Below, piece after piece: positions 7,101-46,069 of a stretch of 64,000 nt of DNA. The DNA is from Oopsacas minuta (Eukaryota; Animalia; Porifera), in assembly GCA_024704765.1 (NCBI GenBank), contig JAKMXF010000365.1, forward strand, positions 248,001-312,000, read 5' to 3'. Made by a program: the position numbers and the translations under genes. Positions within the stretch are counted from its first letter, which is position 1; each line of letters opens with the position of its first letter. Below the pieces are notes generated by a model. The model was given only the letters and a program-made list of their open reading frames with translations. It was not told the origin of the DNA and did no database searches.

Positions 7101-10100
7101 ATATTTGTACAAGTCCTAAGTTGAACAACTCTACATACCTGTGTCAAATTTCGTGTTTATATCTCTTACCAGTTTAACAATAAACTCTAGTAAAATATAA
7201 GATACTTAACCTCTAGATTGTTATACTCAATATTTATTTATTAGCTATACAATGAGTACTGACTCTCCGCTACTACCAGACCCTGATATGAACTATAACT
7301 CATCTCTCCAGGACTTTACTGGTGATGGAATTTGCATGAAGGATTACGCTAAGATTGTATATCTTAACATTCCATCTGCCCATTCAGATGGTAACCATGT
7401 AGTGTATAATATAGAGGTTGGAATACCTAGCTGTATGTGGAGAGTTAGCAAGCGTTATTCTGAGTTCTTCAATCTCCATCAACAGTTACAATGGTTCTAT
7501 TCCTTCCACTCAGATGAACTCCCAAAGAAGAAACTTATCGGTAACAAAACATCTGCTCTAATCGAGAAGAGACGTAGTAAACTAGAATCTTATCTCAAAC
7601 ATGTTCTCAGAACTTTTCCTATTCCTCCCCCACAGTTCCTTAACTTCATTAACTACCAGTATTATGACGTAGTAGGGGTAACACAAGCACTAGCCTCCCG
7701 TCTCTTCCACGTTGGAGAGAAGATCCTTGCTTCTAACGACCCTGCTATTCTGAGTATAGTACAGATGTACTGCATTACTCGGAGACTCAAACTCCCTCTA
7801 GAGAAGCGATCTAATGATACATCACTAGATGTAGCAAACTTATATGAATTCGTAAACAGGCTGAAGCATCTTAAAGTAGTTTCAGACACACAGGATTGTC
7901 TCAGTTCCTCTGTCCTCTCAGAGCTAAAATTCGATCTCTGCATATTCAGGAATCTTTACTCCTTACAACTAGAAGGAACCTCTATGCACCAGGTAGAGGG
8001 CTGGATACTCCTGCTAGATAGATTAGAACTTCTAGTGATACGTAACTCTGCTCGGTCTGTCTCGGACGCTCTCCTTTCCGAGTCCGCCAGGAAGGAGGAA
8101 CGTCCTGATGGAGTATATGTGTTCCCTCGCGCGTATAAATGGAAAGCTCTGACTCACCTCCATCTAACCAGAAACTACCTCAAACAGATAGACGAGACTA
8201 TCACATTAGCTCCCTGCTTAAAAATGTTAAATCTGAGTCATAACGAAATAGAAGAATTACCAGAGCTTTACTTAACATCACTTCACGATTTAACCGTGTT
8301 AGACTTGTCTCACAATAGACTAGAGCAGATAGAGTCCTTACATACCAAATTAGGAAATATACACACTCTAGACCTGTCCCATAACAGAATCAGGAGTCTA
8401 GTGGGTCTCCGTAAACTATATTGTGTAGTTATACTTAACTTGAAATTCAACTCAATAGATGATCTATCCTATCTGAGCTATCTCGGGAAGTTGCCTTGTA
8501 TAGAGAGTTTACAGCTCGACAATAATCCTATTTGCTATCAAATTCACTACAGAATAGAGGTGTTTGGAGCTCTTCCAATTACTTATCAAACTGTTGTCCT
8601 GGATGGATTCAGACCTAGTCAGAAGGAGCTGACAGCTGCTGAGGGTTTAATTAAGAATAGACCAACTTATGGTGTCCAACAGGACAATTCTGCCCTCCCT
8701 CCCTCAAGTGTGGACGCTAGACGGGTGTCAACGCGTAGAGTAGTTGCAGTGTCTGAGGAGAGGGTGCATGAGGGGGAGGAGGGGAGAGTCTATGAGGGTA
8801 CAGTCTCTGAGAGTGAATCACTGAGAGTAGCTACAGAACAGCTGAGAGATAAAGAGGGTAAGAATTGGTTGAATCATTATAACGAACAGCTGGAGAGGGA
8901 GATCGGACGTACGCCCCCACTAGAACCCTCTGCTACTGGACAGCTCCCACCCACCAAGGCTCAGGGCTACTCAACATCTCAGCAAATAGCTGAGAGCGAT
9001 ATCCGTGGCATCCGACCTGAAGCCGACCTTACCCCCGCAGTAGCTAGAGTATCACACGTCACTGACCTAGACGCTAACAGCGATGCAGAGGATCAAGTAG
9101 GGAGAGTATTCATGGCTAGTGCTGTCATATTTCAGGGATCTCTCAAGGATCTCAGGGATCTGGACCCTTCCGCCCTCCAGGAGCTCCTCTCTCCTCCAGA
9201 TGAAGCACAAAATGAAAGTTTAGTAGTGAAAATAGATCTTGAATCTGTACAGATATTATTTGTTAGTTTAGAAAACTCTAAATCTGAATCTCCCAAGAAT
9301 TTCAACAGTTGGAATACTATTTGTGTTCTACCGAGCTATCCTATTGCTGTCTGTATTGAAGAGAGTACACATTCTAAAACCACATGTCGGTTGCTATGTC
9401 TATCCTCTAACGAAGAAGCAGCTGATTTGTGTGGACTCCTACACGAGCTAGTGGGAGAGGCATCCCCCTCTGATGTGTCCTCTCAAGGGGACCAATCTGC
9501 CCCCTCATCCAACCCCTTAACAAACTCAGGAGAGGAGCTGACCTCTACAATGCAGACTCTATTCGCTACAAAGATTAAAGGGCTATACACTAAGGAGGGG
9601 TTCTTCTCTACCCGTATAGCCTCAGAGCTGCTAGGTGCTGTATACTACATACAAGATCTTATACCCGGGTCTATACAGACTATATCACAGATAAATTCTG
9701 TCGATACAGATCCTAGAGAAGAGGAGCTAGTCTATGCAGCTAAAGTAGGATTCTTAATCCCTCTCTCCTCTAGAGATGAGTTCTATTCTCTTGTACTAAT
9801 CACTACTATGGCTATACATATCTTGGAGATAGATCCTACTCTATCTTCTCTCCTACTGGGGGAGACATCTCATCTACTGACGGTTAGACTATGTGAGATT
9901 TCTAAGATAACAATAGGTTCGTTTGACCAGAGTATTAAATTTGAATCTAGGGGTCTGGGTCCTCTAGGAGTGTTCACACTATTCACCCGTGTCTACTCTG
10001 TTACCCAGGGGATACAAAACTGTCTCAAAGAGGTTCTATTAACCGCGAGGCTAGTACCAGAGGTGATTGGAACCCCAGAAAGAAGCCCCACCCATAATCC

Positions 10101-13008
10101 CCTCCCTTCTATCCAAATTGAATACCAGGGCACTGAGCATATTAACACACTCAAACGTATACTATTCCTACACAGTGTTAAGGACACATACAATTCAATG
10201 GAAGCAGGAGAAATGGAAGAATTTTGTGATGAAGGAGTTAAGAGTATTGAAATTCTATTTTATCTGATAATTAACGAGCACACTAGTGATAACATTATGC
10301 TTCCTATATCGTTGATACTAACTAAACAGATGATATACATTGGGGTAGAAGACTATAATGAAACGAGGGATGTTAAACAGATAACTCCCTTCTTTCAAGT
10401 GCTACGTAGTCAGCCTGTATCAGCTATTGATAACATAGAGCTATTCAGAGGAGAGCAGACAGACAGCCGATTAGAAAGTGAGGTTAATTTATACTTTGAG
10501 GCTCTGGAGCAATCACAAACTAATAAATGGAGGCTGTTTTTTACAGATATTACAATTAAACAACAGTTTATTACTACACTAAAGAAACTATGGAAAGATG
10601 AGTTTTCTAGAGAACTAAAGACATCTACTGTATCTATAGAAATGGGATCTCTTCTCTCTTTTAATTATCGTAGTCTCAAGCACAAGTTTCAAGACAGACC
10701 GCATATAGTTATGCCGCAAGAGCTTGTGGATTTTGCATGGCAGGGAGCGAGATCTCTCAGCGCTTTCCTTGGAATAATTACAAGATTCAGTCCTTCCATC
10801 AAGCAGAGACATGAACAAATAGCATTCCTAATGCTCACCTGGTGCACTCCTTACTCTAAGCCTCATCACCTGATTCCTACATGTGCTATACTCACAGACC
10901 AAGCACTGTATTTATGTACAACACAGGATTACTATAGTCTAGCTACAGACAAGACTCCTAATAGTGAATACACAGTGTGTATGTACGAATCTATTAATCT
11001 GGTACAGATACATGAAGTTGTACTAGGTCTGTTTGATTATCACTTCAGATTAGATACTAACTACTCAACAAACACATACGCCTTCCTTACGTTTGACAAC
11101 CGACAGACATCTGAATTTCTATCACATTTAAGTGATAAATTTAAGAAGATACAGATTCCGGCATTAGGTCAGGAAGAGATACCCAGTAAAGAGGTGAGCG
11201 AGCTAGACGCTAAGTTCTCACTGACAGAGGTCTTATTGGCCTCTCCTTCGGAGGCTGAGATCCACACGCTTACAGAAGCTCTACAATTTGAAGCTAGGAA
11301 GCTAATCCCTGCTTCTCTATTAGAAGGTACTCCTAGCATAATTAGCTACATTCTAGTACTATTTGACATTGGAGAATCCAGTATGCAACCACATGCAATA
11401 CTATTGACCGGACAAGCATTATTCCTGTGTCGTATTGATCTGGTTAGATGGCCTATAGCTAAATTCGTAGTGTCCCCTCCTGTTACCATTCAATATGAAG
11501 TAGTAGACGCACTAGCGTTTGAATGGATTGAGCGAGTAGAACTAGCTAGCTTCAAATCTCCAGCATTTGAATTAGTATTCACTGCTCAGAGAAATACTGA
11601 CGCGAACGATGAAACAAATTCTAACTCAGGCTCTGAAGAATGCATAGATCTATCACAACCAATGGCTTGTTCATGTCGCTGGAGATTAATGACTAAAGAC
11701 TACAAACAGAGGAATATGTTAATGAACGCACTAGACGGTGTATGTCAGGGTCGTGACAAGAATATGCCCATAAGTATACAACTAATGACTCAGAAGAACA
11801 ATTAACACTCCCAGACCCTGTATTAGACTGCTCGGCATTGGATTAGTCATAATTATTGTACATTTTGACAGAAATAATTATTTTGTTATGAATGTGTTAT
11901 ATGATTCTATTTAGCTGATATATAAATATCTCCATATATGGTAATATCCTTAAAGATTTTACGTAATCCGCTTATGTGGCATTTGATATGCTAAAGGTGT
12001 GAAACTACCAAATATTAGAGTATTAACACCTGAATTAACTTACTGGCTCCATCCTCCAGGCTCTGTCCTATATACATCCATTACTTCTTGCCATACAGCT
12101 AATATACTTAATGTAGTAACAGGTAGTGCTAGCATGAAGTTAGGCAGCTGTTTAACCTCGTAGTAGTTCATGAGACCTATACCCCAGTGTTTCTGCTGGA
12201 TATACGAGTAAGGCAATATTCCAGTGTAATTGTAGTCCAGTTTATGAGCAGTGTATACTTGATAGCAAATAATAGGAGATAACCCCAGTAGTAATTGAGA
12301 AATACAACTTAAAGATTTTCTTATGAAAGTAGTAAGCTTAAAATCTGTAACGATTCCTTCGAGATAATACATAGCAATGAAAATACACAATATACTCCCA
12401 TTAGACCTTGTACTACACGACAATGCTAAGTACAAACATGCTCTACTTGTCTTACCAGCTATCAAATAGCGGATACAAGCAAAACTGAATAGAGCAAACA
12501 AACACTCCGTATATACTGCTGACATGAATATATTAGCAGGGTTAATAATGAATAGCAGTACTGTTATATGTGATAATAAGGGCCTGTGTGGATATATGAG
12601 ATCTGTTAGTTTATGCAGCTGATAAGTGGCCATAGGGAATGCTATCAAAGTAAGAGTAACACCTGCTATCAGCATTACACTATGCATTTGTACTCCCATG
12701 AATAATAACGGTGATAATAATGTGTAGGATATAGCACGTATTAGAATAGGATAAAGAGGGAAGAAAGCTAGATTAGTTTCATGCTTGTATCCCTGTTCAG
12801 CTATCAGTAGATAATGCTCTCCGTCCCATGAGGATAACCCCCCTAACAGTACCTCTATCAAATATGAGTGTGATTGTCTCTCTTCGTGTAGAGATACGTC
12901 AGCCATAGATCCTGAATGGTTTGGGATAATAAAGTTACTCACAGACTGTAGAAACAGGATTATTAGTCTGCTTCCTAGTGCTAGATATATTGCATCAGAT
13001 GTACGCAT
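4157..13008 (-). CDS. PIGV: GPI mannosyltransferase 2; 3 exons: 13008-12044, 4548-4473, 4414-4157
   Basis: Exon 1 has [38 protein letters not shown]. Donor CA|GTAAGT at 12043 joins in frame to tacag|G at 4548 ([25 protein letters not shown]). A 58-bp intron then leads to [15 protein letters not shown]...FPNFLPWT, the PIGV C-terminus. Confidence 0.92.
4833..5477 (+). CDS. CD225/dispanin (PRRT/IFITM-like) membrane protein, nested in PIGV intron 1
   Basis: P/Q/Y-rich N-terminus, then two hydrophobic segments with [10 protein letters not shown]...NGDYPKA; first ATG at 4833 (track starts at GTG 4821). Confidence 0.8.
6206..6877 (+). CDS. Tumour protein D52-family coiled-coil protein, nested in PIGV intron 1
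   Basis: [32 protein letters not shown] and [11 protein letters not shown] match TPD52 D1/D2 motifs (EIQTLSQVLAAKEKHLAEIKRKLG; SAYKKTSETL). Confidence 0.8.
   Translation: MASSVDTTDKVLTQEPAPTPAPEPATQGMQREGEEGDIESDAERERKEKLLRKAMQLSDEISELYEIANLKEKELAHIKQELGVTFLDELKVSMGSSFKSVSDKWLEMKSSDAYKKTEDTLYGWKDKVTQSDSYKKTVTTISTTGEKATLGLQTATSRTGEAFKRAGESFIENETVQAAWARMVNFKDSLINPVDEPPNTDVSGARPEKEDLVPDENTKPENK
7252..11805 (+). CDS. NISCH: Nischarin-like PX + LRR protein, intronless, nested in PIGV intron 1
   Basis: PX domain (VVYNIEV...[13 protein letters not shown]...PKKKLIG...[12 protein letters not shown]), LRR block ([24 protein letters not shown]), long PH-like C-terminal region. Confidence 0.85.
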   Translation: MSTDSPLLPDPDMNYNSSLQDFTGDGICMKDYAKIVYLNIPSAHSDGNHVVYNIEVGIPSCMWRVSKRYSEFFNLHQQLQWFYSFHSDELPKKKLIGNKTSALIEKRRSKLESYLKHVLRTFPIPPPQFLNFINYQYYDVVGVTQALASRLFHVGEKILASNDPAILSIVQMYCITRRLKLPLEKRSNDTSLDVANLYEFVNRLKHLKVVSDTQDCLSSSVLSELKFDLCIFRNLYSLQLEGTSMHQVEGWILLLDRLELLVIRNSARSVSDALLSESARKEERPDGVYVFPRAYKWKALTHLHLTRNYLKQIDETITLAPCLKMLNLSHNEIEELPELYLTSLHDLTVLDLSHNRLEQIESLHTKLGNIHTLDLSHNRIRSLVGLRKLYCVVILNLKFNSIDDLSYLSYLGKLPCIESLQLDNNPICYQIHYRIEVFGALPITYQTVVLDGFRPSQKELTAAEGLIKNRPTYGVQQDNSALPPSSVDARRVSTRRVVAVSEERVHEGEEGRVYEGTVSESESLRVATEQLRDKEGKNWLNHYNEQLEREIGRTPPLEPSATGQLPPTKAQGYSTSQQIAESDIRGIRPEADLTPAVARVSHVTDLDANSDAEDQVGRVFMASAVIFQGSLKDLRDLDPSALQELLSPPDEAQNESLVVKIDLESVQILFVSLENSKSESPKNFNSWNTICVLPSYPIAVCIEESTHSKTTCRLLCLSSNEEAADLCGLLHELVGEASPSDVSSQGDQSAPSSNPLTNSGEELTSTMQTLFATKIKGLYTKEGFFSTRIASELLGAVYYIQDLIPGSIQTISQINSVDTDPREEELVYAAKVGFLIPLSSRDEFYSLVLITTMAIHILEIDPTLSSLLLGETSHLLTVRLCEISKITIGSFDQSIKFESRGLGPLGVFTLFTRVYSVTQGIQNCLKEVLLTARLVPEVIGTPERSPTHNPLPSIQIEYQGTEHINTLKRILFLHSVKDTYNSMEAGEMEEFCDEGVKSIEILFYLIINEHTSDNIMLPISLILTKQMIYIGVEDYNETRDVKQITPFFQVLRSQPVSAIDNIELFRGEQTDSRLESEVNLYFEALEQSQTNKWRLFFTDITIKQQFITTLKKLWKDEFSRELKTSTVSIEMGSLLSFNYRSLKHKFQDRPHIVMPQELVDFAWQGARSLSAFLGIITRFSPSIKQRHEQIAFLMLTWCTPYSKPHHLIPTCAILTDQALYLCTTQDYYSLATDKTPNSEYTVCMYESINLVQIHEVVLGLFDYHFRLDTNYSTNTYAFLTFDNRQTSEFLSHLSDKFKKIQIPALGQEEIPSKEVSELDAKFSLTEVLLASPSEAEIHTLTEALQFEARKLIPASLLEGTPSIISYILVLFDIGESSMQPHAILLTGQALFLCRIDLVRWPIAKFVVSPPVTIQYEVVDALAFEWIERVELASFKSPAFELVFTAQRNTDANDETNSNSGSEECIDLSQPMACSCRWRLMTKDYKQRNMLMNALDGVCQGRDKNMPISIQLMTQKNN

Positions 13009-32330: not shown

Positions 32331-33176
32331 ATGGCTTCATTGGAAGATAAATTGCTTGGAGATGCTAAACGGGACAATTATTGTTCTGATTCAGATGAAG
32401 AGACAGAGGTCGTTAGGATACCAATGGGGGATGCTAAGCCAGGGAAAGCTGCTAGCAATCAAACCGGCCCGAAAGGAGTTCTGGGAGATTTCAATTTTGC
32501 ACAAGCAAGTGATTTAGGGGAGTTACAACTAGAAGTAGGAGGAGATGCGTTTCTAGATCTCTGGAGACAGAAGGAATTGAAAGACATGAAAAAGAGTAAA
32601 GAGAAAGTCAAATCACCGGTAGGAGCAGGCAGTAGACTATTGGAGCTGAATCAAGAGACATTCTCTAGCTCTATTGATAATAACGAGCCTAATACTGTAT
32701 TGATAATACACGTGTATGGGGATAATCCAAGATGTAAAGAAGTTAGCAAACATTTAACCTCTCTCAGTGTGTATTATCCTCAGGTCAAGTTCTGTCAAGT
32801 TGATGCAATACATGCAGGTGAATTATTTGTAATTTTCCAGTTCTAATCTTATCGGAGAATGCGAGAAATAAAATAGTTGCAAATTTCAACTCCTAGCTCA
32901 TAGAATATACAATTGTTGCTGCTGAATCATTTTACTGATTATTAACAAAATTTTGTATTTTGTATAGGAATGAGTGAGAGTTTCGTGAGTCAGGGTCTAC
33001 CTGCTATCCTGGTGTACAGAGGTACAGAAGTAATAGGGAGCTTTCCTAACATAACAACCTTAGTAGTGGGAGAAGGCAATGAAATATATTACGACGAACT
33101 AGAGTCTTTCTTGATAGACAATGGAATCCTATTCGCAAGTGTTACTCGACACAACACTATGGAAATGATGAAATAA
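32331..33176 (+). CDS. PDCL: Phosducin-like protein PhLP1; 2 exons, intron ~32818-32967
   Basis: MASLEDKLLG, TGPKGV, thioredoxin-like YPQVKFC and LPAILVYRG; junction GCA G|gtgaat...gtatag|GA ATG. Confidence 0.88.
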
Positions 33177-33520: not shown

Positions 33521-36500
33521 CTAAAAATTGTGTGCCATGTGTCCCGACAGGATCATATCGACCTCGTCGGCGTCAAACTCGTCCGGCATAATCTCGTCGG
33601 AGTATACGAGGTTTGTTGGTAGGTCTCTGAGTAAGGGATGTTGCTGGTGATGTATCGTAGGCATATTAGTAGAAGAGGGACTATGATTTACACTGAATGT
33701 TGATATGTTAGAAGGGATATTTTGTGGAGAGTTTAAGCTAGATCTGCTGTCACTTGTTGACTTTATCTAAAGTATAATTAAGCAATTCATGGGATAAATT
33801 CTAAAATACAGTCATCTCCCGTTATATTGAAGTATAAATAGTACAAATATGGTCCGAAACAGTCAAAGTAACATTAATATCATCGGTTATATCGGAGTAA
33901 TTATCCTTGAGTTGCGATCTAACGGGGAGTTGAATGTATACAAACATATATTACCTGGTTATGTCCTCTCAAATCTGTATACTCCAGTCTACAGAATAAT
34001 AAATAATTAATATTAGAGTTATGGATAGCTTTCTTAAAGATATTAACAACTTCGATTCTAAGAAACTGAGCTCAGTAGAGACAGTAGTAAAGACCCAAAC
34101 AGGAGAAGTATTCGTGGAGAAGAGATTAGAGAACGGAGAAGTTAAGATTGAGAAGAAAGAAGGGGAACACGCTGGATTTGTCATAGACTTAACGCCAGAT
34201 CTTAAAGTAGGGATATTAGTAGAAAATAAGATTTGTATTAGTTCACAGGATGTGCCAAGAGATCTACATCTGATACAGGAACAGGGTATAACACATGTAC
34301 TGAATTTATGCTCTCACGCGTCATTTCATACTGACGTCATTAAGTTCTTAGCTGTAGTTTGTTACGATACACCTGAATTCAAGATACATGATTTCTTCGA
34401 TAAATGTTTCGTATTCATAGACAATGCATTGAGTACAGGAAATAATAATAAAGTACTGATACACTGTAACGCTGGTAAATCAAGATCAGTTACAGTAGGA
34501 TTAGCTTATCTCATGCGTACACAAGGAATAAAATGGAGAGAATCTCTGGAACATCTGAAGAAGACTAGACCGCAGGCTCATCCCAACGAAGGATTCATTA
34601 AACAACTAGATGAATATCAAGAACAGCTTAAACTATGATATTTGTTTTTAGTAACAAATATACTCACCCACTACCTCCTTTATCTGCTCCTAGTTTTTCT
34701 AAAGTATTGACTGTTATTTTCATTTGAGAAGTGACGTAATCAAGTGGTCCCTTGTTTGTTTCCTCCGCTAATGATAATATACAGATAAACATGTTGTGTA
34801 ATATTATAATAGTTATGCTAACTAACTAGGTGGGCTGTAGTACTTGGAGAAGGCAGAATGTTTCTCATAACATTGACCATGAGTAGAATATACATGAGTT
34901 AGTTCTGATAGATCCCTCAGTCTAAATCAATAGCAATTCAGTACAAGTAAAGATATAAAAGAAGTACTGACTTATTACCTGTCAGCGAATGGTCGTATTT
35001 GTAAGTCTTTTACGAACCAAGGAGAGAGGAACCATACTTTCTTATCACCTGATATATAGTCATAGAACTTAATACAATAATAATATCTGTAATATATCCA
35101 CAGTCAATCGATCAACTAACCGTTTGCATCCTCAGTTACCCATGCTACACTGATCCCTCCTGTCTCTGTTTCAGAGAATCTTAGCAAGAATGTACCTACT
35201 CTCTGATTAATGAGTATTTCCTGAGCATGCAGCTTACCCATAAATCCGGATATTAAACTACAGCGGGAGATTTTTATATAATAATTCAAACTATGTTAAA
35301 TCTGTCTATCATATACCTTTCTTTCCAGAAGCTACTGAGATGCTTCTTGAGTAGTTCACATATTCCATAGAACCAATCAAAGAACGTGAACGGTTCTCTC
35401 CGCTTCCCTGGAGCTACATGAAGATTTTCCTATGAGAAACACTTGGTGAATACACGTATGTATACTCAGCATAACAAGCAATACATATATTAAGTTGCAT
35501 TTTGAAATAAAGTAATTACGGAGAGCCACAATAGTTAATTACAAATCATCTCTCATGATGTAGATTAGAGGATAAAATGTAATCTAAATTTGCTCAAAGG
35601 GATAAATCAAATACATCTTAAGCTATAGCTATCTTGTAATGTATAAGTTGCTGCCATCATTAAATGTATGCTAATGTAGGTGTATAAAATTCCAAATATG
35701 TTCCAATTAATATTGAATTTAATTAATAAAGAGATCGAGGTACACGCTGCAGATGTTCATGCTGTTGCATTTGATATTAGCAGTAAGTAGTCTCGTGCTA
35801 GAGTAAGTATTGAAATTGTTTCCGTCGTAAACATTTTATATGTAAGATATCAGCGGGAAAGTTGCAGATTTTAGAAGTGTACAAATTCAAAAAGCTTACG
35901 AAACGAAACTAATACAGTGGTTATCGCTTATAAGAACACCCTTGGGAGTAGCAATTATGCTCTTATAACCGGTATATGAGAACCGTTTTCCAGGGTTGGT
36001 TCTTATATTTGATATGTTCTTCTAAGCGATGCCCAGGTAACTTTAGCTTTCTTAACGGGATATTAATTAATACAGTTTTGCTCAGTACAAGAAATAAATA
36101 CTCTGTAGTAACAGCGTAATTAACGAGAGCTCGGCTGACACGTTATTATGACAGTGAAAACTTAGAAACCTGTAACAATTGAAACATATAAGGCCATATA
36201 AATCTAAACGTACGAGTAAATGTGAAAAAGCCATTAAAATTATTGTAAGTTTTCTAATACATTAATCATGTGAGGATTGCTTTATTACGATATATTGATA
36301 TGCATCAGCTTAAGATTAACTCCTTCTTAATTAATATACAACAAATCAGACTATTTGGTATGCTCAATCATTCCATGGAATATGTTCAGGAGGTTGAATG
36401 TAGTCGTAGCTTAGAATTGCAGAATGTGGACCTTTTTGATTTTTCATGAATTGTGATGCGATAAAAACCGCGATTTCTTGCTTAAAACTGTTACTCAGCC

Positions 36501-39500
36501 CTTCTAGCCGAGATGAATCAAAGTCTTCCAGATGGCTCGAGCATTTAGCTTTATCCAATTCCTTCTCAATCTCTCCCCTAATGTCCTCCTCTACTCCCAA
36601 CCAAATTCTAACACTCTCCAAACTTTCCTCGCTTGTGAACACACTCCCATACCTCTGTTTAATAATCTCAAGCAAGAGGAAGTTAGCCCTGTTCGTACCG
36701 ACCTCATCTATCTCACTTCTCATAAGAATATCATCTGTTTTCCTAATCAATGTAACAGGTCCCTTATACATTTTAAGATACGATATAATATTAAGATCGT
36801 AGCAATATCGTAATGAATGTTTTATCAAACTGTGTGGTAGACAGCAAGGTACCAGGGCAGGTACAAGATTGTTAATGTCATCAAATGTAGATTCTAACAG
36901 CAGTCCGTGAATATTCGGGAAGGCAGCAGCTGCATAGCAAGCAGTGAATCCACCGATAGAGCTACCGTGAAGAATAATCCTCTCCAGTGGATAGCCTAAC
37001 TGTTGTACTGCATATGCTATGATAGTGAGAATGGCTTCCTTCTCCTGTCGACCTGTCGGGGACCCTGAGCTGTACCCATACCCACAGTGATTCCAACCAA
37101 GAGCAGCATAACCCTTCCTTAACCAATGATTTATACCTCCTAGCTCCTGGAAGCTGAGGTTTCCCACACACGAAATAGCTAGGAGATTAGGCACAACGTA
37201 ACGAGGTTTCGCATATAGTGTGTCCAGTATCTGACTGCTATTACACTGGAGTCTCGCCCGCACCCCGTTAAAGTTAGTGATAATATTGTAGCGAGCAGCT
37301 GAGAGGTCATATGATGCTCTGTAAGAGGAAAACCTGACACTCCCAGGATAAACGAAGCAGGAGAGGACGCTAGCTAGACAGGTATCAAAGGGATGAGTTG
37401 GAGGTTTGCTAGTATTTGGAGTCAATCTAGACTGATTCTGGTGGAATAAAGGAGGCAAGACTGTGATGTCAAAGTCGAAATACTTTGTGGAATTGTATTT
37501 ATGTTGTTCCAGGCATTGTCTTATGTCTAGCCTCAAGTCTAGAATAAACTGTCTGTATGCTGAATTATTGAACCGTCCGATCCCTCTAACCAGGTAGAGA
37601 ATAAATAGAATTGAGAAGAAAGGAGGAATTAGAAATCCACCGAATGGTACCAATAAACCGAGAGGGAGAAAAGATAATAAAACTAGAGCCCAGAAGCGAG
37701 ATACAATTCTGATAAATCGGTCCGATCTTGCTTCTGCCTGGTTGGGTATGTATGCTGACATTTTCCCATCTAAATAGGAGTAATAGAGGCGTGGCCCTCT
37801 TAAACAAGGAATATACCACTTCAGTACTGACATATGGAATAGATGAATTAATACCAGCACTGTATCAGTTATACAATTGTATATCATTAATTGACACAAC
37901 TTGCTCTAGGACTACTCAATATCTTGTTAGTATATCAAAGTACAGTGGAGATGAATTGTAGATAACTCAACTGCTGGACTGGAGCATCATGCGAGGCAAT
38001 ACTGATAGTATGGCGACATTGGCGAGTAGAATATGTGGTCACATTATAGCTCGATAGTATTGTAATCATATTACAGATATTAATAATGTTCTTCAGGAAT
38101 AAGTAAGAGTTAATAAGTAAGTTTAAATAATGCTTTGAGTATAATTAGATCGACAATTTTCAAAACGGACAAGTGGATAATTTATATATTCAAATCATAC
38201 TCACAATAAATATCTGTAATCTCTCAATTATATTGAAATAAAATTCATTTTTGTATTTGTAATTTTCGACAGACGAGAGTTGAGGCCAGTTGTAATTTGT
38301 AACGATAATTTTAGGTAACAGGTCTGATTGAGAGAGATCTAGTAGTGTATGTCTAGGTCTATCTAAGTGATCAACAGGCACTTTCCAAAACTTCCATTTA
38401 TAATTATTACATAATATAATTGTCTATTGACAATAAAGTCATCATCTCTCTAAACATATTCCTTTGTAGTTATACTAGTACCTCAAACTCGAATTGTGGT
38501 ATTTATAACGATAATATTGATTCAAAGCAATTCAGATTATCCGTCCCGACACAATTAATAAAAACAAATGTATGACATAGAACGCTTTGATATTACCTTA
38601 TTGAAGCTCTGCCATGTAATAACACTATTTCCATTATCTTCTACAATAAAACAGATGGAATAAATCTATATTATTAAACCTCAATTGTTGTTTTCCTGTT
38701 TGTTTGTCCGTTGAATAACTCGAGGCACAATGCGCCGAGTTCATCACGAAGCAACGAGCCAAAGGCTCGTATTCAATTAATAAGCAATGAAAATTCAATA
38801 CAACACTTTGAATGTTTTCTTACCAGAATTTACGTTAGGAAATTTCTTCCAGAGATAGTCAATACAAGCTTCGGGCAGAGCTCCTCCTGTTGTGTTAAAG
38901 AAGTATGCATTCAGAGCTTTTGCTAAGAGGAGCCATGGGACTTGAGAGGGTACCACGAATGGCTCTCGGTTCTAAAACAATGAACACGGTAATTAATTGG
39001 ATGCAAATAGTGATTAATTCAGGTAACTGTGTAAGCAAAATAAATATAGTTAGAAAGGAAAAACTATAAAAATGAGTTAATTATCAAAAGCATAGCTATA
39101 GCTGGGAGGAATATCCTCTTTAAGGGATACTTCAGAATAAGCAGGAGGTATCTGCTCATTTACACCTCCCTGTACATCTCTGCGTCTTTTCATATGTTGG
39201 AAACAGTTAAAACAAGCATAGCATATCATGCTAATAACTAGTACAAATGTTACCAAAAGGCTAATCCCTGATGGAATAAACATGAAGAATATTCTTGAGT
39301 TGAATTCAGTTTGGCCGAGGGCATATGATGAGTAAGGTTTGTGATCACACTTTATCTGTATTATAAAGAGGAGCTGTAGGACGAGTGGCAGTGACAGCCT
39401 GAGATTCATTGTGTCAGGAATGGCGAGATATTACAAATCGCGAATTATTCGAAAAACAGCAATCATAAGTTGTGGGAGCATTATATTGCACAAGAACCGT

Positions 39501-42500
39501 AGAAAATTCGGCAGAAAATGCAACTAGCTTACAGATTCTTACACAGAACCTAAAATGTTAAGTCAACAAAATATCTTAAACACGTATGTTAATTTTAATA
39601 TAGTTGCAGGATTAAGTCAGTTGATGTGTGTAATAATTGGGAACTAAAGAAACAGCTGGTTTTAAAAACAAGTCTATCAACATAGCTTTGTGGAATTCTA
39701 AAGTTTTGTAAGATAATCAGAATTTTAAATTTACAGTCGATTTCGTTAGGTAATCGAGAACCCGTTATACTTTTGATTTATACATACAAATCACATGGGA
39801 GAGCATGCTCCATGAACCTGTATAATACGGAATGTGTTTGTTATTGATAGATTTATAGAGTAACATGTAATACAACAAATTAAAGTACAAATAAAGAAGT
39901 AAATATATTTTCGTATGTACTGTGTATCACACTGCGATATGCGGCTAAGAAGTGAGTGTTGTCAAGGAATCTGACTCTAGATCAATCACACAAATATTTA
40001 TTCACAAATGTCGCATTTTCGAGAGGACACGATATTCCTTTGGACAATTTCTTATGAATATTCTTGGATAACTTTCTCCTGCGTTTGGTAACGAATGAAT
40101 TAAAGAATCTACTGAAGAACGATCGAGTACGAGACAACTTTTTTCGGTTTGTGAATGGTAATGTATCCTGATCAAAGACGAATGCATCGTCGAATTCTTC
40201 ATCAGATAAAAACTCCATATCAAATTCGATATCAAAGTTAGACAAGGAATAGTTACTACTATTTAAAGAGGAAATGGATTCTCTATAGAGAGGCGAGTTT
40301 AGGAGGGAAGAGAATGGATTGAAATCGTCCGTACAAAAACTTGTAGAATGCGGAGAAGCGAGGAAAGCAGCGAACGGATTCAACTCATCGGGACTATGAA
40401 TGTCCTGTCTATCTGAGCTATCAAGGTTCGAGATCAACATACACATGTCAAGCGAATTATCAACCTCTGCAGCTTCGGAAACATCGTTGTGTAATAATAA
40501 TACGGTGGACATAATGAATTCAATTGCAATTACTACTAGAGTGCATATAATAATTTGATCAATGCAAAGTTTTTCTATTTATACTGAACTCTGTAAGAGA
40601 ATATCTAGAAGCTGTCCTATTGGCAAAACGTAATGCAAATACAAAGACTTATATACGGATCCCATTTTGTGCTAGAATAATGCCACAAGACAACACAATA
40701 CATTTATAATATGACGTCATATAAAACTAATGATTATTGTTTCTAGAGTGTGAGAGCATATACCTGATCGAATACTGATACGATAATGGAATTCTATGCA
40801 ATGAATGACGTGAATAGAACATTGTTGCAAGACTATATATAATCACATACCACATCTGAAAATGCTTTATCCCAGAACATCGTGCCTTCAGCACTGCTCA
40901 ATTGACTGCCGTGTACAACTACTGCTACTGGTAAACTGATTGTCTAATTAAACAAATTTAATCATTAATGAAGATTATTACGTATTACAAAAGCAATGAT
41001 TGTATTAGAACTTACAGACACATGGAAATACACATCACTCCCAGGTAGTATGATATTAGATCTGAGTAGTATAGCACACTTCTCATCTGTAACAGTCTAT
41101 AGACGTAATATTAAAATAATTACTGTAGCAGTACTATATTCTATAGCACTTACTTCTGAACCCTTCTTCTCTAACCGTTTGATATTCTTCACTGACTAAA
41201 GATACAACAAAGTATAGAATTGAATAAACAATAGATTTGCTGTTATATTGTACTAACCATGTTACTGAATGTAGCACTCAGTATCTGTGAATTGGGGTTA
41301 TATTCCATAGCCTAAGGGTAGGAGAGAAGTAATGATACAATCATTCCATATAACGAATACAGTCAACTCCCGTCATATCGAATCCTGAAAAATTGTGCAA
41401 ATTGGCCCCAAACCTTCAAAGTAACAAAATTACATAGGTCATATCGAACTCCGTATTTATCGAAGTAATTACAGCGGTCTCTTGAGCTTCGATATAACGA
41501 GAGTTGACCGTAAAGCGTAATTACTAACTCTTTTATTGTTGAGCATCTGTCCACAAGATATATCATTCGCACTACAAAAGTTGTACAAAAGAAGAATCAT
41601 TGAATCTAGCTATTTCTCCTGAGAGCTGATTAGGAGTATAAAGCTCAATACTCGTAATAAGCGTCAGGATATTGTAGCAGTTGTGTAACGAGTAGCACTA
41701 CTCACGTATACTCGGCTAATTACTGCTAATACATATAAATATGCAATTGAAAGGTTTAACTTACTGTAATGTATCTGGACTAGCTGTCAAGCCTTTAGCT
41801 TGCTTCTCACTAAATAATTATTGCAATTAATCTACACAATATTTGCATCAGTGAGATACGTAATTGTTGATGATTTGGACAACACAGATAAGTGAAAATT
41901 TCTAAAACTATAGTCAGAATAAAGATTCCCTTTATGGTAGTTTCTAACAATTCCACCAAACCAAAATTGTACTGAAATCTAGAAGCCAATATTTGGTATA
42001 TCAAGACAGATCTATTAAGTGACACATTCTAAGGCAGTATTAAATTGAACTAAATGGAAACACAATGGATTATAGAATAATTGTGCCAAATTGCTGTGTG
42101 CACAAACAGATGTTAGTCTTCGTCCAGATGTAATGAATTAAGAATCACATATGCTGAATCCGAATAACTACATTAAGTATTTCTTAAATATTCACAGACA
42201 CTCCTGCTGTCTATTCTTTGAATTCAATGTTACGTGAAACGAACGAGAAGGCTTATATAATTGATCTCATTTACCTTATGATAGTAGCTATCACTTCAGG
42301 AGGATTCATATGAATATTTAATTTCCCTCCAACCATCAACCTAGATTAATATAAACAGATAACAACGGGATCAGGGGATTGGAATGTATGTATCTTACCT
42401 CACTGTACATGAGAATCTGGTGTTTGTTTTGAGAACCTGAGGGGGCTGTTTCTCTACCACGAATGAACTAGAAATAATTATTGTAAATATAGAGGGAACA

Positions 42501-45185
42501 TTTCATAAACAAATAATTATTACTTTCTAAGAAGGAATACAATTAAGTTGTCTACTGTCTGGTTATAATCCTCTGGTATTTCTGTACCATTCATCGGTAA
42601 TTGACTCTTCAGTCTGTAATACTAAAGTTGAAATTTTATAAATTTAAGAATTCGCTCCAAGAACCCCCTGGGGACAGTTGAATATCATCAATTTTTCTTA
42701 AAATCTGCTATTACGGTTAACATTTTGAGGTTTCACTAACTTGTTTGATAAACTGTTTATTTCTCCAGAGTAACTCAGCTAAAGTTTCAAACCATCCTTG
42801 TAACACTACTAGCAGATCATCAGCTGGGGGAGAAGTGTCTAATCCTAGAGCTTGGTTCTGTATTCTCTTCCAACCGACAAGTTCATCGTTTACAACCAAA
42901 TGAATAATGTTACTGAGATCAGCGAGTAACATGTGAAACTGTTGTGTAATAGTCTATAAGACAAACCATTAAATGCTCAGATATTGTTTGCTTGTAATAC
43001 CAAATAAAGAACTCGGTAAAACAGTTTACGCTTGCAAAACAAGAATTAAATTCTTCACATATTTACTTCCTAATCAAATTGTTTTAATCCACCATATTAA
43101 GGAGCTCACAATTCTATTCTGTTGTAAATTTTCGACCTCTTTATTTAGCGCTAATTCTGTTTCTTGTAATTTCAATCTCAAGGCTTGAACCTACAACACA
43201 TTCTGTATTAAGTGCAAAAATAGTAGTTTCATCTGCACAATCGGGAATACAGATGTTAAAATATCAAAAATTTAGAGTATCGTATCAAACTCACCACTTG
43301 AGGGTTTACAGGGTGTTGTGAGTGATGAGTTACCATAGCTGTAAGAGAAATTAGAAATATTATAGCAATAAACACAGTCATTTCTAAATACGGAATTAGT
43401 GTATAGTTATGCCATTATAACTACATAGTACATTTTAATATGTCTGAGTAAATACAGAAAGCTGTCCTGAAAATTTGCATTATACACAAATTGTGCTATG
43501 TTAAAGAGACAATTTACCTTGAAGCTTATGGCTCTCGTTAATGTGAATAATAAAGTACTCTTGTTGATGCTCAAGGGATTTTAGAAGTCCTTCTGCTTCC
43601 TAGAGAGATATATAGAAACAGGGAAAATCGTGTAATTGAACAAGTTAGAATTCAATCAATAACATACATGGGTCATGACACAAATCTTTTGAATAGATTG
43701 CCCAATAGCCTCGTGTGAGTTAGATCCTGATAATTGTGAGCCTGGGGGAGAGTGTACCAGTTTTGAGGGGTCAGGAGAGTTAGTACTGTGATGTGAGGCA
43801 GCAGGGCTAGGTTGTGGGCTCATATTAGCTCCCTACAATAAGAACTATACAATTGACAGAACCCATTTCAGACATAAATTAGTATACAAGATGGATAACT
43901 ACTGATTGAGATGAATCCCACACAAAGTTTTTTCAAGATTACTGCAGACAGTTAGGTTTAGACAGAGGCTAGAATATTTTCCTGGTGTAAACTAGCTTAT
44001 CAAAAGACTTCATCAAGCTAATTACTAGCTAATTATATTACATTTGTGATAAAGTTGTTAACGCGAAATATTATAATTGATAATAATTTACTGTAAAGAA
44101 TTTGGTGATGCTATTTGCATGTGATTAATTGGATAGAATGTCTATTATAGTTGTACAAATCAAGAATTCAGTTTATAATCAATTACACCTTTCGAACAAT
44201 GAAGATCGCTTACTTTCATACAAGGAAAGTCCCAAATATTTACAAATTAAAATCAAAGACATAAACAAACACACTTTTCCAATCACATTAGTATATAATC
44301 AGTGAACAATACTAACCTGATACTCTTTGAGGAATTGTCTTTCTGTTTTTAGAATACTCTGCATTTGTTCCACTAAATTGAAGGGATTTGAGTCGAAGTT
44401 CGCCTAACCGAAATAACAAAACACAACTTTAGAGTAAAGCGAAATAAAACAATAATACTTCAATCAGAATTGAGTGTAGGCTAATATACTAAATTGCTTA
44501 TATAGAGCATTGATTTGTACGATTTGATTCTGAGTAAGCCTACACAAGGGTAAATAAGGAAGTGGCCAAGAAATTATTATATAGGAGCTAATAATCGTTA
44601 AATACTACAGCAATTGGACGCATACAATTACCACAATTTGTGATACTTGACTGGCCTCGGCCAATTACATCTATAATTAACACAGACTAGATAAGGCAAG
44701 ATAGAGTACGTACTGGGCAATTTATACGACTTGACAAGCAGTATAATACCATAAATTACTGTACTTACTTACCTGTAATTTTTCAAGAACATCTTCCCAT
44801 TTCATTTTATCTGTAAAGTCTATCATGTGCTGTAGAATGTACAAGAACGAAGCCTCAATTATCAAACCATTGAATGCTGGTGGTTATCATTGAATAGTGC
44901 GTTAAGAGTCATGCATATGTGTATTAAAGCCACATTAATAGAAGTATATGTGAACTTTTAACAAGTGCATTTTTGCATATCCTTCGCATAAATAGACACG
45001 GAGTTATTAAGTAGGGAATAAAGGAATTACTCATTTATTAAACTCCGTATATTGAAGCGGTTCAAGTTTAAATAATTCATTCAAGAGGCAATTAACATTA
45101 AAATGTTACACAACTATGTAATGACACAAGCAAAATAGGGGAATAATATAGTACTATTAAATGGGAATTTGGTGTTGTTGTTGTT

Positions 45186-45220
<35 letters not shown>

Positions 45221-46069
45221 GCTAAAACAACATATCTAAGATTTGTAAATTAGCTATCCAAATGAGTTACCATTCATTCAAGTGAATTAGCATCTGTGAA
45301 AGGTATAATGCAATCGACAGGTAAGAAACCTTTATGCAACTAATAATACTCATTCAATCATCGCAGCAATCAAATCCATTATCAAGTTAATAACTGTAAT
45401 ATTTGTTATAGGGATGCTTATTCTGTGAAGGTGGTTGTAAATAGCGATTTTAACTGATTGTGAGTTTGTAAAGAAGAAGGGAAGTAAATGAATCAATCGA
45501 CCATTTGTCTATGGCTCGAATGCTTTATAGGATATAACATGGATAAAGATACGTGTAGGAATTTGATATTTAGGATTTCTAACAGTAGATTATAACGATA
45601 ACAGAGGCTAGAAAGTGCTCTACTTGTCATTCTTACTTACAGAATATTCTATACTATTACTTCAGCAATACGGTTAATAATACAAATAACAGATACTTAC
45701 ATCTTTAATATTTCTGAGCTGGGTTAACATGTCTCCGTACAGCTGTTGAGCTTCTTGTTGATGGACTGGTACAGACCGATCCAAGTCATGCCTAAGTAAT
45801 ACAAATGTATAAAAATATACAAAATATGTACACGTGAGGTACGATAACCGAACTTACCACCTCTGACTCTCAATCCATTCAGCTAGATGGTCCCGTATCT
45901 CAATAGGGAAGTGCTTACCGTATAACCCCCTGATGCTGTTTAGTATTCTCTGATCGTTAATACTCTTTACATTCTGCCAGAGAGCGCCAGGAGGACTTCC
46001 CATATACCTACAGTATTAAGTTTATTAATCACTCCATACAATACAATGATATAATAAGACTTACGCCAT
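33521..46069 (-). CDS. STAT: STAT transcription factor (STAT5-like), about 28 exons; almost absent from the ORF track
   Basis: Hand-spliced in-frame GT-AG exons give LYGKHFPIEIRDHLAEWIESQRW (N-domain), NDELVGWKR...LQGWFETLAELLW (coiled coil), VEKQPPQVLKTNTRF, LMVGGKLNIHMNPPEV, TISLPVAVVVHGSQ (DBD), FTFFDWFYG, GTFLLRFSETETGGISVAW (SH2), DYVTSQ (pTyr); stop TAG at 33523-33521; first micro-exon (ATG GC at 46069) uncertain. Confidence 0.93.
33807..33938. mobile_element. Tc1/pogo-type MITE (family B) in the last STAT intron
   Basis: Imperfect TIRs TACAGTCATCTCCCGTTA ... TAACGGGGAGTTGAATGTA with TA at both ends. Confidence 0.7.
34021..34638 (+). CDS. DUSP19: Atypical dual-specificity phosphatase, DUSP19-like, nested antisense in a STAT intron
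   Basis: HCNAGKSRS catalytic loop, PNEGFIKQL, DUSP19-type N-terminus (KDINNFDSKKLSSVETVVKTQTG). Confidence 0.85.
   Translation: MDSFLKDINNFDSKKLSSVETVVKTQTGEVFVEKRLENGEVKIEKKEGEHAGFVIDLTPDLKVGILVENKICISSQDVPRDLHLIQEQGITHVLNLCSHASFHTDVIKFLAVVCYDTPEFKIHDFFDKCFVFIDNALSTGNNNKVLIHCNAGKSRSVTVGLAYLMRTQGIKWRESLEHLKKTRPQAHPNEGFIKQLDEYQEQLKL
35913..36033. mobile_element. MITE family A copy within a STAT intron
   Basis: TACAGTGGTTATCGCTTATAAGAAC ... GTTCTTCTAAGCG inverted ends; core shared with the copy at 14309. Confidence 0.6.
36364..37833 (-). CDS. ABHD16A: ABHD16A-like alpha/beta hydrolase (lipase), intronless, nested on the same strand in a STAT intron
   Basis: CLRGPRLY N-terminal motif, GWNHCGYGYSSG, GSSIGG nucleophile elbow, ESTFDD; likely start MSVLKWY at 37833 (the track's upstream extension is doubtful). 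Confidence 0.82.
   Translation of the reverse strand: MSVLKWYIPCLRGPRLYYSYLDGKMSAYIPNQAEARSDRFIRIVSRFWALVLLSFLPLGLLVPFGGFLIPPFFSILFILYLVRGIGRFNNSAYRQFILDLRLDIRQCLEQHKYNSTKYFDFDITVLPPLFHQNQSRLTPNTSKPPTHPFDTCLASVLSCFVYPGSVRFSSYRASYDLSAARYNIITNFNGVRARLQCNSSQILDTLYAKPRYVVPNLLAISCVGNLSFQELGGINHWLRKGYAALGWNHCGYGYSSGSPTGRQEKEAILTIIAYAVQQLGYPLERIILHGSSIGGFTACYAAAAFPNIHGLLLESTFDDINNLVPALVPCCLPHSLIKHSLRYCYDLNIISYLKMYKGPVTLIRKTDDILMRSEIDEVGTNRANFLLLEIIKQRYGSVFTSEESLESVRIWLGVEEDIRGEIEKELDKAKCSSHLEDFDSSRLEGLSNSFKQEIAVFIASQFMKNQKGPHSAILSYDYIQPPEHIPWND
39077..39409 (-). CDS. Small type I membrane protein with two PPxY motifs, nested on the same strand in a STAT intron
   Basis: Signal peptide, TM, juxtamembrane Cys cluster CYACFNC, PPAY and PPSY. 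Confidence 0.6.
   Translation of the reverse strand: MNLRLSLPLVLQLLFIIQIKCDHKPYSSYALGQTEFNSRIFFMFIPSGISLLVTFVLVISMICYACFNCFQHMKRRRDVQGGVNEQIPPAYSEVSLKEDIPPSYSYAFDN
39982..40512 (-). CDS. Orphan 176-aa protein with acidic/Ser-rich body, two NPF motifs and a basic tail; nested in a STAT intron
   Basis: ATG-started ORF of 531 bp, more GC-rich than its flanks; internal repeat DELNPFAAFLASP / DDFNPFSSLLNSP; no family recognised. Confidence 0.5.
   Translation of the reverse strand: MSTVLLLHNDVSEAAEVDNSLDMCMLISNLDSSDRQDIHSPDELNPFAAFLASPHSTSFCTDDFNPFSSLLNSPLYRESISSLNSSNYSLSNFDIEFDMEFLSDEEFDDAFVFDQDTLPFTNRKKLSRTRSFFSRFFNSFVTKRRRKLSKNIHKKLSKGISCPLENATFVNKYLCD
41358..41512. mobile_element. Tc1/pogo-type MITE (family B) in a STAT intron
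   Basis: TIRs TACAGTCAACTCCCGTCATATCGAA ... TTCGATATAACGAGAGTTGACCGTA; shares caaagtaaca core with the copy at 33807. Confidence 0.8.
45173..45220. repeat. (TTG)n microsatellite in a STAT intron
   Basis: Visible trinucleotide tract with one interruption. Confidence 0.95.

Follow-up and report, generated by a model that had tools for sequence, protein, structure and literature searches.

Does a gene remain one gene when four others stand inside it? This question is raised by a 64,000-nucleotide (nt) stretch of the genome of the glass sponge Oopsacas minuta (assembly GCA_024704765.1, contig JAKMXF010000365.1, positions 248,001 to 312,000), which we call the window and to which all positions refer unless another contig is named. 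A preliminary description of this DNA had proposed that a STAT gene, made of very short exons, is hidden in it and hosts four complete nested genes. We consider it very probable that the locus is the single canonical STAT5/6-like gene of O. minuta, split in 27 exons, and that three of its introns are enlarged by complete, independently conserved genes. The STAT reading frame extends on the minus strand from an ATG at 46003, and not from 46069 as previously suggested, to a stop codon at 33521-33523 (i.e., a span of 12.5 kb).

The first element of the answer comes from the STAT domains themselves. The minus strand of the window was read via stop-to-stop frames that were scanned against Pfam one exon at a time, many of the micro-exons being too short to score singly. 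By this way, STAT_int was found in 46015-45857 (48.7 bits, positions 1-42) and in 44403-44302 (positions 94-119), STAT_alpha in 42953-42720 (48.7 bits), the start of STAT_bind in 42502-42398 (27.3 bits versus a cut-off of 27), STAT_linker in 38971-38798 (29 bits), and SH2 in 35295-35119 (32.9 bits), so that the matches follow the STAT domain order exon by exon. A genome-wide six-frame Pfam search recovered STAT_alpha at 42726-42950, positions 1-18 of STAT_bind at 42398-42451 and a piece of SH2 at 35125-35247, all on the minus strand. STAT pieces were found in this search at this locus only, which is the sole STAT_alpha/STAT_bind locus of the genome. The full domain architecture was taken from an orthologous protein, P0012 (850 aa), single exons being searched separately. 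When used as a query, the 78-aa STAT_alpha frame leads to the protein P0003, whose 90% cluster includes P0012; both derive from the intron-less Logan contigs L004 (SRR29297748) and L005 (SRR29297746), i.e., from RNA. P0012 contains STAT_int (80.9 bits), STAT_alpha (85.7 bits), STAT_bind (123.9 bits), STAT_linker, and SH2, and its nearest solved structures are STAT5B/5A (E ~1e-130), followed by STAT6 (E ~1e-77).

Alignment of P0012 (tblastn) and of the L005 cDNA (blastn) with the window delimits 27 collinear blocks. The alignment with P0012 is free of indels, its residue numbering being shifted by a constant 3, and identity extends to 716 of the 835 whole codons (85.7%). Computed by script, exon by exon, the coding exons (n = 27, 34-246 nt) sum up to 2544 nt (i.e., 847 codons plus the stop), all introns are GT-AG, no exon contains an in-frame stop, and the phase arithmetic is consistent from the first exon to the last, i.e., it yields one continuous spliced frame. 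Hence, every STAT domain can be rebuilt in frame, as first proposed from the sequence, while the initial count of ~28 exons of ~35-250 bp has to be corrected to these 27. The gene had rightly been said to be hidden from the ORF track: its exons are so short (71 codons in the largest internal one) that it is invisible to an open reading frame (ORF) finder, and the bacterial-style ORF list of the window contains, apart from scraps, nothing but the passengers and a DNA polymerase beta gene. Of its introns, 22 measure 56-484 nt and intron 2 reaches 871 nt; the three others are the inflated ones, located exactly where they had been placed, at 40850-38972 (intron 18, 1879 nt), 38596-35430 (intron 20, 3167 nt) and 34667-33989 (intron 25, 679 nt), each with the ORFs ascribed to it. 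According to the Pfam limits on P0012, intron 18 falls after residue 519, at the boundary between the DNA-binding domain (DBD) and the linker, intron 20 after residue 583, inside the linker, and intron 25 after the exon of the candidate phosphotyrosine (pTyr). The four units carried by these introns lie, again as initially described, in both orientations; three are on the host strand and one is antisense.

All the exons are on the minus strand. The N-terminal domain starts in exon 1 (45858-46003), which encodes residues 1-48 plus 2 nt from the ATG at 46003-46001, carries the first STAT_int match (48.7 bits), is identical to P0012 at 37/48 residues and ends on a GT donor. Exon 2 (45701-45791) is aligned by tblastn with P0012 residues 53-82 and exon 3 (44773-44829) by the cDNA (L005 323-378), AG/GT borders and phase fitting in both cases; exon 4 (44317-44403), which holds STAT_int positions 94-119, terminates the domain with 27/29 identical residues. 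A Ser/Pro-rich spacer and the start of the coiled coil are found in exon 5 (43668-43832, 48/55 identical). The coiled coil continues in exon 6 (43518-43599, 26/27), and exons 7 (43295-43338, 44 nt with AG/GT borders, 13/14) and 8 (43110-43190, 26/27) precede exon 9 (42741-42953), the largest internal exon, also coiled coil, which contains STAT_alpha positions 72-141 (48.7 bits); exon 10 (42524-42621) follows with 30/32 identical residues.

The DBD occupies exons 11-18, which are 88-100% identical to the P0012 stretch matching STAT_bind. It begins in exon 11 (42399-42467, 22/22 identical), with STAT_bind positions 1-18 at 27.3 bits, and is pursued by exons 12 (42275-42340, 21/21), 13 (41765-41809, 45 nt, placed by tblastn on P0012 403-417 with a fitting phase), 14 (41529-41571, 43 nt, 12/14), 15 (41258-41311, 18/18), 16 (41154-41195, 42 nt, 14/14), and 17 (41016-41096, 27/27). 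Its end, in exon 18 (40851-40943), is identical to P0012 492-522 at 31/31 residues and stops in phase 0 on the GTATGT donor of the first large intron. The linker starts in exon 19 (38824-38971; STAT_linker positions 2-48, 29 bits), continues in exon 20 (38597-38640, 44 nt, 13/14 identical, AG/GT borders), which provides the donor of the second large intron, and finishes in exon 21 (35317-35429, 36/37 identical), whose junction also exists in a public model discussed below. The SH2 core is in exon 22 (35121-35257; SH2 positions 3-44, 32.9 bits), where the motif GTFLLRFSE includes the phosphotyrosine-binding arginine, and SH2 extends in exon 23 (34979-35048, 20/22). Exon 24 (34827-34921, 25/31) has a GTTAGT donor. 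Exon 25 (34668-34767), with the GTGAGT donor of the third large intron, contains the candidate pTyr motif GPLDYVTSQ, which is C-terminal to SH2 at the expected place and conserved in P0012. Then come the 34-nt micro-exon 26 (33955-33988, LEYTDLRGHNQ, 7/11 identical, also in the public model) and exon 27 (33521-33766), a Ser/Pro-rich acidic tail with the stop codon, identical to the P0012 C-terminus at 62/81 residues and matching no Pfam family.

This protein shares its domain order (N-domain, coiled coil, DBD, linker, SH2, tyrosine motif, acidic tail) with the vertebrate STAT5A/STAT5B and STAT6. Unlike them, the O. minuta STAT, of 847 aa, has a Ser/Pro-rich insert that follows its N-domain, and a second conserved tyrosine motif is encoded by its 34-nt micro-exon.

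Are the large introns really removed as introns? We addressed this point in other glass sponges, using genomic contigs from ENA assemblies, i.e., L006 (ERZ25069837), L007 (ERZ25072730), L008 (ERZ25766962), and L009/L012 (ERZ20067936), reached via searches with the STAT_alpha exon, ORF176, ABHD16, and the phosphatase. The L004/L005 cDNA is, block by block, 97.5-100% identical to L009/L012, and we therefore attribute this cDNA and this genome to one species. All 27 exon blocks recur there with equal lengths. In its mRNA, exons 18 and 19 are directly joined, the 2686 nt between them, with an ORF176-like gene and two PPxY genes, being spliced out; so are the ~3.7 kb between exons 20 and 21, which contain ABHD16, and the 809 nt between exons 25 and 26, which contain the phosphatase gene. 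Hence, the three proposed host junctions are all spliced in the cDNA of a relative at the orthologous locus.

The anticipated synteny of the nested genes was also found, in four other glass-sponge assemblies. The order is the same in 4/4 of them: STAT exons 1-18, the ORF176-like gene, the PPxY ORF (none in L007, two copies in L012), exons 19-20, ABHD16, exons 21-25, the antisense DSPc phosphatase, the final exons and a phosducin-like gene. Moreover, the polymerase-beta gene stands directly upstream of STAT exon 1 in the 3/3 loci that reach that far (L006, L007, and L008). Across the nested ORFs, dS ranges from 1.3 to >2.5 (saturated) and dN/dS from 0.04 to 0.28, and the intron DNA beyond the ORFs and 100-130 nt flanks is not alignable between species. 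Because the surrounding intron DNA cannot be aligned, the nested ORFs have been kept by selection and not by recency. Judging from these substitution patterns, the nested ORFs are under purifying selection and the passengers are functional genes.

What are these passengers? Host intron 18 (38972-40850, minus strand, GT..AG, phase 0 on both sides) carries two small ones on the host strand. The first, ORF176 (39982-40512), encodes an orphan, lineage-specific protein of 176 aa with an acidic N-terminal half and a basic C-terminal tail, and an AATAAA is present 18 nt before its stop codon. Full-length orthologues occupy the same place in L006, L007, L008, and L009/L012, with 45-70% identity and a dN/dS of 0.08-0.09 (dS being saturated). 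The second, ORF110 (39077-39409), encodes 110 aa comprising a signal peptide, one transmembrane segment, and two PPxY motifs. An intact 110-aa orthologue exists in L006 (39% identity, dN/dS 0.28), where the motifs are kept, and its counterpart in L008 is a 116-aa ORF. In the more distant glass sponge represented by L012, intron 18 contains two tandem membrane ORFs (10001-10462 and ~10680-11047 of that contig) with two PPxY each. The PPxY passenger is gained and lost, and the other passengers stay.

One may ask whether ORF176, and especially ORF110, are genes at all, since they could be open by mere chance, be conserved as regulatory DNA, or serve STAT as alternative exons, which would leave two or three nested genes. 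Neither of them has a Pfam family over threshold, the protein atlas search yields only sub-threshold leads and no reliable match for either, and no transcripts were found in the collections searched; in addition, no copy of ORF110 turned up in L007, and the one in L006 has no more than 39% identity. We nevertheless regard this explanation as unlikely. Indeed, the start, stop, and length of ORF176 are kept in five other assemblies with a dN/dS of ~0.09 at saturated synonymous sites, the signal peptide, the transmembrane segment, and the two PPxY of ORF110 persist in its L006 and L008 counterparts, L012 has two copies of it, and the STAT cDNA includes neither of the two ORFs.

Host intron 20 (35430-38596, minus strand, GT..AG, phase 0 on both sides) holds the third nested gene, an intronless ABHD16-type lipase gene (36364-37830, minus strand) of 488 aa with its ATG at 37830. 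Its product matches Pfam ABHD16_N (53 bits) and Abhydrolase_1 (31.2 bits), and its nucleophile elbow (GxSxG) reads GSSIG; it shares with human ABHD16A, a phosphatidylserine lipase, both ABHD16_N and an alpha/beta hydrolase domain with GSSIG. It is 84% identical to its nested orthologues (488/488 aligned, dN/dS 0.04), ~130 nt upstream of it are likewise conserved, and an AATAAA is located 80 nt after its stop. Three intronless ABHD16 paralogues exist in the O. minuta genome, i.e., the nested one and those at C14:30241-31695 and C302:147889-149454, which are respectively 58% and 34% identical to it. The ABHD16 tree comprises several paralogue clades in the relatives and leaves unsettled the strict orthology of the distant relative's nested copy.

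It is at this intron that the public annotation departs from the 27-exon STAT gene. The NCBI O. minuta protein P0022 (695 aa, "Abhydrolase domain-containing protein 16A"), 100% identical to the window, joins ABHD16 (37761-36469) to STAT exons 21-27, with the same junctions from exon 21 to exon 27 as in our model. Taken at face value, P0022 would mean broken or separate genes, i.e., an N-terminal STAT fragment and an ABHD16-SH2 fusion. We hold this to be extremely improbable. P0022 lacks the stop and the 34 final codons of ABHD16, an ORF whose full length is conserved in the relatives. The relative's cDNA passes directly from exon 20 to exon 21 without any ABHD16 sequence, and phase 0 on both sides fits the junction 38597|35429. 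Moreover, the pipeline behind P0022 was Augustus/BRAKER1 with RNA-seq hints, and nested prediction is often disabled in such programs (PMC10282587). The public O. minuta model is a chimera of ABHD16 and STAT. Word searches returned no O. minuta public record for ORF176 or for the phosphatase, the same type of search having returned P0022, and an exact protein look-up of the phosphatase gave no record either. The chimeric P0022 and the missing passenger records fit the remark made in PMC10282587 on predictors unable to nest.

The last passenger, in host intron 25 (33989-34667, minus strand, 679 nt, GT..AG, a junction used in P0022), lies antisense to STAT. This gene (34021-34638, plus strand) encodes an atypical dual-specificity phosphatase of 205 aa, DUSP19-like, with the active site HCNAGKSRS and a Pfam DSPc match of 97.8 bits. 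Its ORF represents 618/679 nt of the intron (91%), leaving 32 nt to exon 26 and 29 nt to exon 25. Human DUSP19 and DUSP3 share with it the DSPc fold and the HCxxGxxRS active site. Among PDB structures, DUSP19 comes on top (4.8e-20) with DUSP3 nearly equal (1.9e-19), so that the assignment to DUSP19 made at the outset is only marginally the best; by sequence, the protein is "DUSP19-like" at most. Orthologues are found in the same intron of four relatives, with 69-79% identity and a dN/dS of 0.05-0.07.

We also considered that STAT could end at exon 25 by an in-frame TGA, the phosphatase being then a convergent neighbour, and rejected it: this TGA sits in a perfect GTGAGT donor. After exon 25, the P0012 cDNA runs on with 11 residues, LDYTDLGMHMQ, followed by a tail of 81 residues sharing 77% identity with 33766-33524. 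These 11 residues match the AG/GT-flanked micro-exon at 33988-33955, whose length is exactly the 34 nt required between exons 25 and 27. L008 and L009 also have this micro-exon with its splice sites, and the public O. minuta model includes it too. The phosphatase gene is thus truly intronic, since the donor at exon 25, the micro-exon, and the tail continue STAT. Exon 26 also carries, in three species, a second conserved tyrosine motif (L-E/D-Y-T-D-L), 24 residues past the candidate pTyr. Further downstream, the relative's STAT cDNA (L005 2975-3167; window 32971-33163) extends without splicing into the terminal exon of the convergent phosducin-like gene, which reflects either overlapping 3' ends or a merge in an unstranded assembly.

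Several observations weigh against the reading of one STAT host with four independent passengers. The splicing of the host in O. minuta itself is drawn from orthology and from a public gene model that is chimeric. Transcripts of the nested genes were not found in the sequence collections searched, and their independent transcription is read from conservation only. Among the nested genes, canonical AATAAA/ATTAAA hexamers were found only near ORF176 and ABHD16. Finally, ORF110 is fast-evolving, and no counterpart of it was detected in L007.

How could such a locus be expressed? To make a full-length STAT pre-mRNA, RNA polymerase II would have to read through the three same-strand units, poly(A) signals included, and would run head-on against the antisense phosphatase unit; the host introns would then be removed, together with their passengers, by ordinary cis-splicing. 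Promoters of their own probably drive the nested genes, given that the 100-130 nt upstream of ORF176 and ABHD16 are conserved while the rest of the introns is unalignable. As only ~30 nt part its ORF from each neighbouring exon, the phosphatase mRNA would overlap STAT exons 25 and/or 26 in antisense.

Another possibility is that the same-strand passengers have no promoters of their own and are excised from the STAT pre-mRNA in an operon-like manner (e.g., by spliced-leader trans-splicing and internal polyadenylation). A trans-spliced leader of ~37 nt has been reported in Aphrocallistes vastus (PMC10282587), and three of the four passengers are on the host strand. Moreover, the neighbouring DNA polymerase beta gene (47233-46220, minus strand), which is intronless, ends 216 nt before the STAT ATG, and its only AATAAA is 18 nt upstream of this ATG, beside an acceptor-like TAG (46008-46010), a spacing which is operon-like. 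We find this scheme quite improbable, since leaders occur on only 4% of long reads in A. vastus (PMC10282587), host cis-splicing would face competition from any usable acceptor preceding a nested gene, and ordinary promoters would account just as well for the sequence conserved ahead of ORF176 and ABHD16. The 5' UTR of the relative's STAT cDNA has no match in the O. minuta genome, and its own-genome contig, L012, starts inside exon 1.

Beyond independent promoters, the nesting could in principle be a conserved regulatory device, in which the phosphatase would be coupled to STAT output by transcriptional collision or by sense-antisense RNA, the same-strand passengers competing with the host via intronic polyadenylation or trans-splicing. 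To this idea we accord only a small chance; if true, a mechanical link would exist throughout Hexactinellida between the expression of the host and that of its passengers.

Nested genes are not new in these animals, and STAT itself is an already known gene of metazoans. In glass sponges they are abundant (12% of genes), often conserved, and mostly single-exon (Francis et al. 2023, PMC10282587), and the 83 nested genes of the O. minuta v1 annotation, versus 2432 in A. vastus, are an under-count, nested prediction being often disabled in gene predictors (PMC10282587). The nested genes reported in A. vastus and O. minuta are, as here, complete genes inside host introns (PMC10282587). Unlike the cases described there, where a STAT host is not mentioned, three introns of a single host contain here four passengers, of which three lie on the strand of the host. 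The STAT locus with its nesting is described neither in PMC10282587, nor in PMC10280926, nor in what a literature search returned; the O. minuta genome paper, which argues for a loss of core metazoan signalling genes in glass sponges, never mentions STAT (PMC10280926). Bilaterian nested loci, e.g., those of Drosophila (PMC5174743), also place a short passenger in a long host intron with transcriptional interference to be expected, but in O. minuta the passengers mostly lie on the strand of their host, and the phosphatase ORF takes up 91% of its intron, so that the phosphatase mRNA would overlap host coding exons. The locus is a further, well-documented case of a known nesting pattern together with an annotation correction, and brings no new principle.

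Its value lies elsewhere. With it, the sole STAT gene of a glass sponge, in a lineage argued to have lost core signalling genes, receives a correct model. It also illustrates that annotation without nesting yields a chimeric "ABHD16A" with an SH2 domain, and such errors can distort gene-content comparisons. Lastly, it offers a compact and deeply conserved test case in which a host transcript faces three same-strand passengers and one antisense passenger expected to overlap its exons. Concerning the kinases, the six-frame search of the genome detected no Jak1_Phl or JAK-type FERM_F2, an absence that the search's own controls make uninformative.

Some minor observations concern intron 2 of the host. 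Exon-like stretches located there (NLIMDLIAAMIE at ~45390-45355, a poly-Gln stretch at ~45249-45187, and others) were rejected as exons: they are absent from the cDNA-derived orthologue and lack usable splice sites. The sequence at 45187-45249 is a CAA/CAG-type microsatellite that reads as poly-Gln in one frame and is non-coding according to the cDNA. The same intron contains a block of ~285 nt (45227-45512, minus strand), also absent from the cDNA, for which we obtained no Rfam match and no covariation-supported fold. This block is 68% conserved with L006 and partly with L007, although other DNA of the introns is not alignable, and a 25-mer within it hardly varies at all; it may be a regulatory element.

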